DNA of 64,000 nt, taken from the sequence record OR805293.1; one strand, written 5' to 3'. The position numbers and the translations under genes were made by a program. Each line of letters begins with the position of its first letter. Position 1 is the stretch's first letter. Below are positions 41,324 through 47,625 of the stretch, piece by piece. The notes below the pieces were generated by a model. It did no database searches. It saw only the letters and a program-made list of their open reading frames with translations, and was not told where the DNA came from.

Positions 41324-41740
41324 GCTTACTAAACAGTTACTTGTTAAGTAAGTTAAAAAGTCTGTAACAGTGATGTTACAGGATACACAGGCAAATACGG
41401 TTGGAAGATGCTGTGTAAAGAACAAATATCCAGCTCATTCCTAGGCATTATAGCCTACACAATATACTTGAATGGGCATAAAAACTTCCAAAGAACCTTC
41501 GAAATTTTCTCATAGGATAGTGTATTAGAAGGAATGCACTATCAGGAAGCTGTAGGTGATGGTTGCTATCCCAGACAGTCCTTTCTAAAATACTTTAATA
41601 TGATATAAAGTTCTATGCAACCGTATACATGCTGTAAGATATTAGATTACACCATGTATTAAACGTAAAAGCAAAACCTTCAGTTAGTAATCTCGCAGTG
41701 AAGGGGGTAGGTGAGTGCTACCCAAACTCAACAAACAACT
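41324..41740 (+). ncRNA. candidate structured ncRNA or long 5' leader (ncRNA-1)
   Basis: No ORF >=60 aa; promoter; multiple stems (see findings). Confidence 0.5.
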
Positions 41741-41766
41741 AATGGTCTAGAAAAGGTATAGTATAC

Positions 41767-42174
41767 ATGCAACATACTCACATTCGTTTCTACAACGAAG
41801 AAACTCAACAGATCGATAACCGCCGTGGCGCTACTGTTGCCTGGGAAACCGCCGGCAACAAGATCCGTATTTCCGTAGCAGCATGTTCGGAAATGGATAA
41901 CTTCAACCGCAAGACCGGACGTGAACATGCTGCTAGCCGTCTCGAAAGTGGCGACTACATCGAGTTTAACGGCACCGAACTTCTTAATGCACAGATGTCT
42001 TCTGTAAGTCATGTGCAGTCTGAAGGTCTCGTTCGTGCTATGTGCTTCTTGCTAGCACAAGGCAAAGGCGATCTATATTACCCGGCAAGCGAAGGTCAGC
42101 TTCGCAGCGAAGCCGAGTGCAATAGCTACAACGCTCTCGAGTACCTGAAACACCAGATGGGCATTCATCAGTAA
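41767..42174 (+). CDS. GC-rich hypothetical phage protein
   Basis: AAGGT RBS; motif AACSEMDNFNRKTGR; host-like codons. Confidence 0.85.
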   Translation: MQHTHIRFYNEETQQIDNRRGATVAWETAGNKIRISVAACSEMDNFNRKTGREHAASRLESGDYIEFNGTELLNAQMSSVSHVQSEGLVRAMCFLLAQGKGDLYYPASEGQLRSEAECNSYNALEYLKHQMGIHQ

Positions 42175-42187
42175 GTATTCGGCCATT

Positions 42188-42230
42188 CGGAATTGCGATT
42201 TAGGTTTTGGAATTCTAAATCGCAATTCCG
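42188..42230. terminator. 16-bp perfect hairpin
   Basis: CGGAATTGCGATTTAG-11 nt-CTAAATCGCAATTCCG. Confidence 0.55.
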
Positions 42231-42415
42231 GTTTCCAAATTCAATTTTAGGCACAAACTCGGATCCGCATTTGCATTTTGCATTTACATTTTGTGTTCTG
42301 AGTGTATATGCAAAATGCAATCGCGCATGTTGTCGATGCATTGGCTAATCTTTTATTTTTGATAGTTTAGAAAAGATTAAGAACAGAAACTATCTGTAAA
42401 TTAATAAAAATAACA

Positions 42416-42444
42416 TTTACATTACATACACATATGCATATACT
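42416..42444 (+). promoter_or_regulatory. sigma70-like promoter
   Basis: TTTACA-17-TATACT. Confidence 0.75.
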
Positions 42445-42450
42445 ATATAC

Positions 42451-42728
42451 AAGTTATGCGCTGTTGCATACGTAAATACCTCCTATGTTGTTTAGATATG
42501 TCGATTCTGGTATAACCAGATAGACCTAAGGATGATGCTAGTGATTCCTTAGTATTGTATATTCTAGCTGAGTATAAAGAGTAAGGGGCTTTATACAAAT
42601 AACAATTCCCTAGGCAAGATATACCGCTCCGTTGTGCTGACGAGCATAATTTGCCCAGATACAGAGCACGTGACTGGTCTGAGGAGCATTTATATCAGAA
42701 AGGCAGACTTATGTTTGCCTTTCTTTTT
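42451..42728 (+). ncRNA. candidate ~275-nt structured ncRNA (ncRNA-2)
   Basis: Bounded by promoter and terminator; no credible ORF; several stems and a possible pseudoknot. Confidence 0.65.
42697..42728 (+). terminator. intrinsic terminator
   Basis: AGAAAGGCAGAC-ttat-GTTTGCCTTTCT followed by TTTT. Confidence 0.85.
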
Positions 42729-42742
42729 GAGCAAATATTCTC

Positions 42743-42786
42743 TTATTCATTTCCTTATTCATTTCCTTATTCATTTCCTTATTCAT
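42743..42786 (+). repeat. 12-bp tandem repeat TTATTCATTTCC x3.7
   Basis: Direct reading. Confidence 0.9.
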
Positions 42787-42790
42787 CTCT

Positions 42791-42930
42791 ATTTCATTTG
42801 TTATTGCAAATAAGAATTAGTCTTATTTGCGTTTGTAATTTCATTTGTTATTGCAAATAAGAATTAGTCTTATTTGCGTTTGCAACGAAAAAGAATATGC
42901 AAATAATAACTAATCTTATTTGCATTTGCA
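42791..42930. promoter_or_regulatory. cluster of three palindromic boxes (GCAAATAAGA-N5-TCTTATTTGC)
   Basis: 45-bp perfect direct repeat 42791-42835/42838-42882, third box at 42898-42924. Confidence 0.75.
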
Positions 42931-43095
42931 CTGCCTATTATATGGATTGGTAGCATACTTGGAAATGGATAGTAAATAAGTAGTTGATTTGTTTATAAAT
43001 TTTAATTCTATATCGTACTGATTGACCTTGCTATATATAGCTCGCGCGCGTATACAAGATGGTAAAAAATAATTTAAAAATATTTTAAAAAATGC

Positions 43096-43219
43096 TTGAC
43101 TTTCCATTACTACGACCTTAAAGTGCGAACTGTAGACGCAGTGTGTAGAGCGCTACATAGTAAGCAACGCAGAAAGTAAACAAAAAATGCTTGACGCAAT
43201 GCAAACTAGGCTCTACACT
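43096..43219 (+). promoter_or_regulatory. tandem sigma70 promoters
   Basis: TTGACT-17-TAAAGT (43096-43124) and TTGACG-17-TACACT (43191-43219), both preceded by AAAAAATGC. Confidence 0.75.
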
Positions 43220-43302
43220 GTATACAAGCTTAAGGGGTAAGTGCCCCGAAAGTGTAGTAAGTAAACAACATAATCCTTCCATCAGCTACAGAGGTATACA
43301 AC

Positions 43303-44007
43303 ATGTCCGTACATATCACTCGTCAACGTACCGACAAACAGCACGTCCTGGCACTGGCAATCAACGGCGTGGTCATCGGCCAGACTATGGCTACTTACAC
43401 CACCCCGAGCAAGCGCACCTGGTCGGCGACCGCTGAAGTCGAACTGGCAGACGGCACCGTCGTACAGTTCGAGCAGAAAGAAGTGTTCAGCGCGATCCGC
43501 ATCACCCGCGAAATCGAGCAGGCGCTCGACGGCAAGGAACTGGCGGCCAAGTACACCCCGGAACCGAAAGTTCCCGGGCAGAAGGGTCCGAAACCGCTCA
43601 CCGACGAAAGCCGGCTCAGCAACGCGATCGCGATCGTCAAGGCGGCCATCACCCACACCGGCTTCGACGAAGCTACCCTGGTGTTCGACGGGGTCGACAA
43701 GGCCAACTTCGAGCAGAACAGCACCTCCGTCGGCAACAAGCTGCGTCGCCTGGGCTTCGTCTTCGAACTCGGCGCCGGCAAGGCGAATAGCGGCAAGGGC
43801 TTCCTGATCAACCGCAAAGCGCAGGCCGAGGCAGAAGCTGCCGAACGCAAGGCCAAGCGCGATGCCGAGAAGAAGGAACGCGAAGAAAAAGCGGCGGCTG
43901 CCAAGCGCGAAGCTGACGAACGCAAGGCCAAGCGCGAAGCCGAACGCGCTGAAAAGGTCGCTGAAAAGAACGCAGCGATCGCCGGGGCAGCGCAGGAAAG
44001 CAAGTAA
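43303..44007 (+). CDS. very GC-rich protein with Ala/Lys/Glu/Arg-rich C-terminal tail; paralog of 62563..63018
   Basis: GAGGT RBS; host-like codons; shared NGVV.GQ...VQF.Q..VFSAIRI domain. Confidence 0.9.
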   Translation: MSVHITRQRTDKQHVLALAINGVVIGQTMATYTTPSKRTWSATAEVELADGTVVQFEQKEVFSAIRITREIEQALDGKELAAKYTPEPKVPGQKGPKPLTDESRLSNAIAIVKAAITHTGFDEATLVFDGVDKANFEQNSTSVGNKLRRLGFVFELGAGKANSGKGFLINRKAQAEAEAAERKAKRDAEKKEREEKAAAAKREADERKAKREAERAEKVAEKNAAIAGAAQESK

Positions 44008-46965: not shown

Positions 46966-46994
46966 TTGACATTTGATGTGTATACTAGTATAAT
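46966..46994 (+). promoter_or_regulatory. consensus sigma70 promoter
   Basis: TTGACA-17-TATAAT. Confidence 0.9.
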
Positions 46995-47000
46995 TTGCTC

Positions 47001-47625
47001 ATGCTGTCGTAACAGCTACTTTGTTCCATTCACAAGCAGCTCTGTTCCATTATTGGATATTGGTAGTAGAAACTATCCCCATCGTGCCCACAGTATTGTT
47101 CTGTTAGAGACAGGTTAAAGCATACAAAAGTGGGTTATTTAAATTATGATTTTGGGTGCTGAAGTATAGTCGTTAGACAAGGATATGTCTAATGTTGCAA
47201 AGGACTATGCGAAACGTATTATATATCTTATCCGATATTAGATATGTAATAAAAGGATGAAGCTCTGGTAGAAACAGAGTGTAATTCTTGCTTGTATTTC
47301 GCACGAATATACAAAAGAATATACACACCAACTTCAGCATTGATGTAAATTTTCTAGCATAGGTATATAACATCGATGTTCCGGGATTCATTGGAAACAA
47401 TGAGAGAATGATGTAATCTGAGGAAAAAGGTCCCCGCCTCGTCCATATTACGAAATGGTTTTGAGTACTTATGCCCTCGTCCTATATTGGCATATGGGTT
47501 TTATATTTCTCCCGTAATTACGGGAGAATATAATTTCCTGAACCTACTTGGAAATGGACGCTTCTGATGTGCTTCGCACATCATCTAAGGGCCTTCACCC
47601 TTACCGCTAAGAGCAAGAGCAAAAG
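47001..47625 (+). ncRNA. candidate ~600-nt highly structured ncRNA (ncRNA-3)
   Basis: Consensus promoter; no + strand ORF >=60 aa; nested multibranch stems (see findings). Confidence 0.7.

Follow-up and report, generated by a model that had tools for sequence, protein, structure and literature searches.

The stretch of phage DNA described here encodes a real, very abundant and folded non-coding RNA, one that has been in the literature as ncRNA001 since 2020. To the published description we add a gene model, which comprises a promoter, a likely start, a terminator and a division into core and leader, and a contrast in conservation that is evidence of strong purifying selection. Known RNA families, sister RNAs and the minus-strand ORF annotations of several GenBank records are excluded, and a testable hypothesis of competing helices is put forward together with a possible trimming of the leader. 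ncRNA001 is among the most abundant transcripts of its genus of jumbo phages, Wroclawvirus. This genus includes candidates for phage therapy, and one of its members, phage Paride, is said to kill dormant P. aeruginosa.

Identity of the RNA

The window, by which we mean the whole stretch of 64,000 nt that was analysed (from sequence record OR805293.1), comes from a PA5oct-like jumbo phage of Pseudomonas (genus Wroclawvirus, family Arenbergviridae); it has a dozen tRNA genes and is densely packed with small ORFs. When 50,697 phage records were searched by sensitive blastn with positions 42380-42760, only 11 records matched, all of them Wroclawvirus and with identities of 99.0-100%. Over the 381-nt query, phage Deifobo does not differ from the window (100% identity, blastn), and the orthologue in PA5oct was confirmed by an identity of 99.5% over 381 nt, which allows the annotated coordinates to be transferred (Table 1).

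In the PA5oct GenBank record (MK797984), ncRNA001 is entered as “annotation based on RNA-Seq data” and its locus is placed within a terminal repeat of ~39 kb. The annotation was made from strand-specific RNA-seq, in which ncRNA001, on the plus strand, accounts for 2.40% of the phage reads early, 5.07% in the middle and 4.68% late in infection (Lood et al., 2020; PMC7318152). The same paper states that no promoter is known for ncRNA001, finds likeness in GenBank only to phage MIJ3, and gives no function (Lood et al., 2020; PMC7318152); a search of the literature revealed no later work on this RNA after 2020. Locus, strand and neighbours are the same in PA5oct and in the window, and two substitutions (42610 and 42677) fall inside the RNA. 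Apart from the promoter, terminator, structure and function that the PA5oct paper does not describe, there is no essential difference from the RNA analysed here.

Table 1. Features of the ncRNA001 locus (window positions; pairing values are predicted probabilities)
Feature	Position	Strand	Basis or description
ncRNA001 “putative lncRNA” equivalent (EST35_0036)	42471..42706	+	Coordinate transfer from PA5oct MK797984 8263..8498
Conserved upstream region	42264..42415	.	No variable site at 42264-42449 in 11 strains
Possible UP element, A/T-rich, directly 5´ of the -35 hexamer	42398..42415	+	Inferred from sequence; invariant in 11/11 strains
Sigma-70-type promoter	42416..42444	+	TTTACA 42416-42421, 17-nt spacer, TATACT 42439-42444; invariant across strains
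5´ leader carrying ACCUCCUA (42478-42485)	42451..42497	+	X1/X5 contig depths; predicted folds
Abundant structured core	42498..42696	+	Predicted folds, pairing probabilities, X1 depth
Hairpin 1	42500-42525 (core 42506-42520)	+	TCTGGT/ACCAGA, extended by GUC/GAC; pairing 0.95-1.0
Hairpin 2	42526-42552	+	CTAAGGA/TCCTTAG; pairing 0.58-0.95
Hairpin 3	42558-42576	+	UAUAUUC/GAGUAUA; pairing 0.82-0.93
Alternative to hairpin 3	42572-42596	+	GTATAAAG/CTTTATAC; pairing ~0.05
Central domain	42613-42658	+	Includes hairpin TGTGCT-GACG-AGCATA 42633-42648; GGCAA/UUGCC 42613-42655, pairing 0.04-0.69
GCUCC/GGAGC pairing	42626-42630/42683-42687	+	Pairing 0.23-0.95
Shared 3´ strand	42682-42696	+	Two candidate partners (leader, internal segment)
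Intrinsic terminator	42697..42728	+	12-bp stem, UUAU loop, U-run; hairpin 42697-42724

Transcription unit and expression

The initial annotation, made from the sequence alone, had proposed an RNA that runs from a TTTACA-17-TATACT promoter to a strong terminator. Both elements are present where it placed them, and the RNA between them corresponds to the ncRNA001 that was detected in PA5oct by strand-specific RNA-seq, with contigs from RNA libraries ending at the terminator. The promoter matches the consensus at 10 of 12 positions and has optimal spacing. Such matches are common in A/T-rich DNA: a scan of 2.1 kb gave 7 promoter-like sites, where shuffles predict 5.3. Taken by itself, the match is therefore not significant; it derives its weight from its position ~12-20 nt upstream of the starts of the RNA contig and of the annotation. 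Transcription is predicted to start near A42451, and the contig of run X5 and the PA5oct annotation start at 42463 and 42471, respectively. The terminator hairpin has an energy of -17.4 kcal/mol; a simple terminator scan missed it because its greedy stem consumed one U.

The -10 hexamer is overlapped by a perfect 10-bp palindrome, ATATGCATAT (42432-42441), and a TGCA-rich imperfect palindrome of 26 nt (inverted repeat I2, 42263-42328) lies in the conserved block upstream. The latter is a possible regulatory site, and a regulator might bind to the ATATGCATAT palindrome and the upstream TGCA-rich repeats.

The stretch is contained, at least in part, in 20 public runs from 13 studies, and 10 of these runs are recorded as RNA. 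In run X5 (RNA-seq, 2018), a single contig, 42463-42708, is all that is found across 41700-43400. In run X1 (RNA-seq, 2020, another strain), the summed contig depth reaches 220,000-700,000 between ~42498 and 42725. The contigs of the RNA libraries are thus restricted to 42463-42725 at very high depth and describe a discrete, abundant RNA with no plausible ORF. At the terminator the depth in X1 falls from ~168,000 to 164 and then to 0 beyond 42726, and transcription therefore ends there almost completely (termination above 99.9%), just before the downstream repeats. A riboswitch or transcription attenuator was considered and rejected on the grounds of this more than 1000-fold drop in depth and of the position of the next plus-strand gene, which lies 575 nt downstream behind two promoter-like sites of its own. 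Contigs of the environmental RNA libraries X8 and X14 cross the promoter or the terminator; they possibly represent DNA and were not counted as expression.

The leader behaves differently from the core. A contig that spans the upstream region and the leader in run X1 (42162-42527) has a mean depth of ~1,500, and since the leader (42451-42497) shares this contig, its depth is at most ~7,000, a shortfall of at least 30-fold relative to the core. It is nonetheless included in the X5 contig 42463-42708. The abundant species in X1 apparently starts near 42498, immediately 5´ of hairpin 1, and the 5´ leader may be trimmed off in this form, as judged from contig depths of one run (X1) rather than from mapped ends.

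Conservation and relatives

The window and nine other Wroclawvirus records were aligned over ~1.8 kb; the eleventh strain, Deifobo, is identical over 381 nt and was not added to the alignment. The gene and its upstream region (42264-42733) have 4 variable sites in 470 nt among 11 strains (42450, 42517, 42610 and 42677), and the block takes in ~190 nt upstream of the transcription start. Its flanks vary at 5-10%: the left flank (582 nt, including the gp35 gene) has 29 variable sites, and the right flank (327 nt) has ~35 substitutions in addition to indels and changes in repeat number. The contrast is significant (Fisher p=1e-4 for the block against the left flank), and we take this comparison of sequences as evidence that the ncRNA001 gene is under strong purifying selection.

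Only three variable sites fall in the core (42498-42696) among the 11 strains, and all three can be reconciled with the predicted pairing. The variant at 42517 changes a G-C pair to G.U in hairpin 1; at 42610, U.G replaces C-G in each of the two candidate folds described below; and 42677 is unpaired in fold A. In a mutational scan, 70% of single substitutions leave the predicted minimum free energy (MFE) unchanged or better, and the natural variants consequently carry little weight on the question of structure.

Outside the genus, the blastn search of the 50,697 phage records revealed no relatives. IMG/VR gave nothing by either flanking protein or by 22-mer, and the genomes of 185,579 species scanned by 21-mer gave no match. 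A scan of metagenomes yielded a single contig, which does not differ from ncRNA001 in the part that it covers. The proteins gp35 and gp38 found only self-clusters in a word-based protein search. With only near-identical relatives, there is no sequence diversity for covariation. A paralog was found neither in the window nor in the whole 288-kb Deifobo genome (BLAST, nhmmer), and no antisense match to ncRNA001 longer than 13-15 nt occurs in the 288-kb phage genome.

Predicted structure

The sequence from predicted start to terminator (42451-42728) folds with an MFE z-score of -2.9 relative to shuffles. For the core with terminator (42498-42728) the z-score is -4.2 (-4.16), and none of 200 shuffles folds as well. 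With a z-score of -4.4, the opposite strand folds no less well; folding thus gives no information on the strand, which is assigned from the published stranded RNA-seq and the orientation of the terminator.

Pairing probabilities were computed over three assumed 5´ ends. The best-supported predictions are hairpin 1, hairpin 2, the GUGCU-GACG-AGCAU hairpin and the terminator. The complementary segments of all stems listed in the initial annotation are present at their given positions; its third hairpin (42572-42596) is outcompeted in the predicted ensemble by the hairpin at 42558-42576. For the pseudoknot that it suggested, with GCTCC/GGAGC and GGCAA/TTGCC, both sets of complementary segments are present and the geometry is possible, but the two pairings are nested alternatives, the pseudoknot is not needed, and nothing speaks for it.

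The long-range architecture is predicted to involve a competition for a shared 3´ strand. In helix A, the leader (42472-42477 and 42480-42484) pairs with 42682-42693, CUCCU (42480-42484) with AGGAG (42682-42686) and GUAAAU with AUUUAU. This helix would close the whole molecule and accompanies the GGCAA/UUGCC stem. In helix B, which is nested, the internal segment 42618-42630 pairs with 42683-42696 through GCUCC/GGAGC and GAUAUA/UAUAUC. Folds in which helix A or helix B is forced have the same energy (-79.3 kcal/mol each). The predicted ensemble is divided 55:43 between A and B, with a range from 5:95 to 75:23 depending on the assumed 5´ end, and the leaderless core is predicted to adopt helix B.

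Comparison with known RNAs

The initial annotation had proposed cmscan as a check for known families, and no Rfam family matches ncRNA001. With Rfam 15, the only matches at the gathering threshold were tRNAs in other parts of the window; at E<=10 there was no match inside 42451-42728 and only microRNA-like noise on the flanking palindromes. The families covered include the hammerhead, twister, HDV-like, hatchet and pistol ribozymes, riboswitches, 6S, PrrF, RsmY/Z and CrcZ.

The 6S RNA, RsmY/RsmZ/CsrB and CrcZ are abundant, stable and structured RNAs that have their own promoter and terminator and act stoichiometrically, and ncRNA001 is similar to them as far as this can be judged. It differs in having no Rfam match; its predicted fold lacks a rod with a central bubble, and the AAnAAnAA motif occurs just once. 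A sponge of the RsmY/RsmZ/CsrB type was rejected: there are only two GGA triplets, both in predicted stems. Compact, highly expressed viral RNAs that bind a host factor, such as adenovirus VA RNA I, the EBV EBERs and phage decoys (pseudo-ToxI, anti-CRISPR RNA repeats), offer an analogy only. Unlike the ToxI decoys, the ncRNA001 transcript has no tandem ToxI-like repeats, and we know of no P. aeruginosa CRISPR repeat that it resembles by eye.

The same terminal repeat encodes further RNAs, ncRNA002 of PA5oct and a three-copy family of large RNAs (window 46966-47625), that are likewise orphan, structured and bounded by promoter and terminator; ncRNA002 is likewise highly expressed in PA5oct. ncRNA001 is about half the size of these RNAs, occurs in a single copy, and shows no relation to them in sequence or structure. 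Membership of the three-copy family was rejected with a covariance model (R1) of its ~150-nt core. This model scores 155.3 bits on the family's own copy at 47027-47175, whereas its best score for ncRNA001, over 42438-42574, is 3.1 bits (E 8.6).

Possible functions

Our analysis establishes ncRNA001 as an independent, abundant, conserved and structured RNA. The reading that we favour, with a confidence about evenly divided for and against, is that this RNA, made from its own promoter, acts in trans and stoichiometrically on a putative partner. The strong sigma-70-type promoter drives a primary transcript of ~275 nt that is ended almost completely by the terminator and is very abundant throughout infection. 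The stable species would be a compact multi-hairpin core of ~230 nt (~42498-42725). The leader would either close the ends of the molecule by pairing with the 3´ strand AGGAGCAUUUAU (42682-42693) or be displaced or removed, upon which the same 3´ strand would pair with the internal GAUAUACCGCUCC (42618-42630). The RNA would bind and titrate a putative host or phage factor; general blocking of ribosome binding sites (RBSs) and self-cleavage would not be expected of it. Stoichiometric action in trans is suggested by the size and abundance of the RNA, its constitutive expression, its invariant sequence and the lack of any complementary target for it in the phage genome. As to the nature of the partner, the size of the RNA, its multi-hairpin build and its abundance slightly favour a protein over another RNA. 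No known protein-binding signature is enriched in ncRNA001: its 279 nt hold two GGA triplets, where base composition predicts ~2.9, and AAnAAnAA occurs once. Gp35 was tried as an RNA-binding partner and dropped, as it has no family match; a single-sequence AlphaFold model of this protein (pLDDT 54) was not used.

The initial annotation suggested that the anti-Shine-Dalgarno-like motif ACCTCCTA, which is indeed present at 42478-42485, could make ncRNA001 a trans-acting RNA whose CCUCC occludes strong RBSs; in a related form of this model it mimics the 3´ end of 16S rRNA. ACCUCCU matches this end over 7 nt, fold B, equal in energy to fold A, exposes the motif in the loop of a weak hairpin, and the RNA is abundant enough for stoichiometric action. 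However, the motif occurs at the rate expected by chance on the plus strand of the 64-kb window (ACCTCCT once against 1.3 expected, CCTCC 9 times against 11.8), with no sign that this occurrence has been selected, and it sits in the leader, whose depth in X1 is below that of the core by a factor of at least 30. CCUCC (42479-42483) is ~60-80% paired in the predicted ensemble of the full-length RNA, and the pairing of the motif with AGGAG (42682-42686) has a probability of 0.05-0.75 depending on the assumed 5´ end. No phage message or RBS has an extended complement to it (10 matches with at most three mismatches in forward orientation and 7 in the reversed control), and an RNA of this kind would also strike the mRNAs of the phage itself. 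We consider such an action improbable. Given its internal 3´ partner in the predicted folds, the ACCUCCUA motif is most likely a structural element rather than a free seed. A further reading is a two-state switch in which the leader GUAAAUACCUCCU and its internal look-alike GAUAUACCGCUCC compete for the 3´ strand AGGAGCAUUUAUAUC; trimming of the leader or binding of a partner would flip the fold, and the exposed ACCUCCU would capture Shine-Dalgarno sequences or act as a decoy for a host factor that recognises the 3´ end of 16S rRNA. We regard this as a long shot, but if true, ncRNA001 would be a phage-encoded mimic of the ribosome end. A serious rival to the favoured reading, although one that we hold to be clearly the less probable, is a base-pairing riboregulator with another seed, in which an exposed loop or linker would target host mRNAs or sponge a host sRNA, with or without Hfq. 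Seed pairing is the commonest known mode of action of bacterial and phage sRNAs, and the U-tail of the terminator and the predicted single-stranded A-rich linker with AAUAACAA (42598-42605) fit class-II-like Hfq ligands. The Hfq-type features thus comprise a terminator with a U-run and one AAUAACAA, a motif that is common in the genome; AATAACAA occurs 8 times in the window, which is unremarkable in an A/T-rich genome. An RNA of 230-275 nt with at least five hairpins is also large for a seed-type sRNA, and it has no significant complementarity within the phage genome.

The remaining readings place the function in the DNA, in catalysis or ligand binding, or in a protein. The locus might be a cis-acting element, either through an RNA that primes replication or forms an R-loop, or mainly as a DNA site with iteron-like 12-mers and palindromes downstream. 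The transcription unit adjoins a tandem array of 12-nt repeats and three 25-bp palindromes, it lies in the terminal repeat, and the DNA upstream of the promoter is as strongly conserved as the RNA. This reading is nevertheless unlikely: transcription terminates by more than 99.9% just before the repeats, which vary freely in copy number between strains, GC skew does not turn locally, and a primer would not be expected to accumulate as free RNA in such large amounts. Still less probable is a new self-cleaving ribozyme or ligand-binding aptamer, which the initial annotation had also raised. An abundant form that apparently starts ~47 nt downstream of the predicted start, the complex predicted fold with its possible pseudoknot, and the presence of a CUGACGAG string would be in line with it. 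Yet no ribozyme or riboswitch family, including all self-cleaving classes in Rfam, matches at E<=10, the CUGACGAG string is the tip of a hairpin with none of the remaining hammerhead core, there is neither an expression platform nor a downstream gene for an aptamer to control, and processing by a host RNase explains a trimmed leader more simply. That the stretch codes for protein, through minus-strand ORFs (51 and 32 aa) or a 19-aa leader peptide on the plus strand (42456-42515), appears very improbable. The records of Deifobo, Paride, Ettore, Cassandra and PAC2 tile it with short minus-strand “hypothetical proteins”, automatic annotation of Deifobo, Paride and related records calling ORFs at 42443-42598 and 42591-42689, and the minus strand at the anti-Shine-Dalgarno site reads AGGAGG followed after 8 nt by ATG. 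The frame led by this AGGAGG has only 8 codons, however, and the published stranded RNA-seq places the transcript on the plus strand. All three natural variants (42517, 42610 and 42677) are non-synonymous in the minus-strand ORFs (derived by hand), the plus-strand ORFs are at most 19 aa and lack a Shine-Dalgarno sequence, and the annotations of PA5oct (curated), 30-2 and 30-3 leave the body of the RNA free of coding genes.

Neighbouring sequences

The two flanking genes (41767-42174 and 43303-44007) are GC-rich islands, with ~50% and 55-64% GC in a region of 25-33% GC, and both are orphans without relatives beyond the genus. The product of 43303-44007 is a virion protein confirmed by mass spectrometry in PA5oct, and RNA run X1 has a very high representation of gp35. 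After gp35 there is a perfect 16-bp inverted repeat (window 42188-42230), the 11-nt loop of which in Cassandra is the exact reverse complement of the loop in the window (42204-42214).

Downstream of the RNA, the ORF EST35_0037 (“extensin-like protein”, 42711-42932) starts inside the terminator hairpin of ncRNA001 and crosses the 12-nt array (42737-42790), which differs in copy number between strains and has an RNA depth of about zero; this ORF is probably spurious. The array is followed at 42791-42930 by three copies of a 47-nt unit, each with an operator-like 25-bp palindrome, TGCAAATAAGA...TCTTATTTGCA. A string that resembles a half-site, TACAAATAACAATT, occurs inside ncRNA001 at 42594-42607. 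In the palindromes at 42806-42830 and 42853-42877, the 5-nt centre is ATTAG in the window (42816/18/20 and 42863/65/67) and CTAAT in most other strains. Here and in the inverted repeat after gp35, the centres are flipped between strains and the arms are intact, which looks like inversion of the spacer by recombination between the arms. Further downstream, an identical 14-mer, AAAAAATGCTTGAC, is found at 43087-43100 and 43182-43195, 95 nt apart, and both copies supply the -35 region for a promoter-like site that precedes the structural-protein gene.
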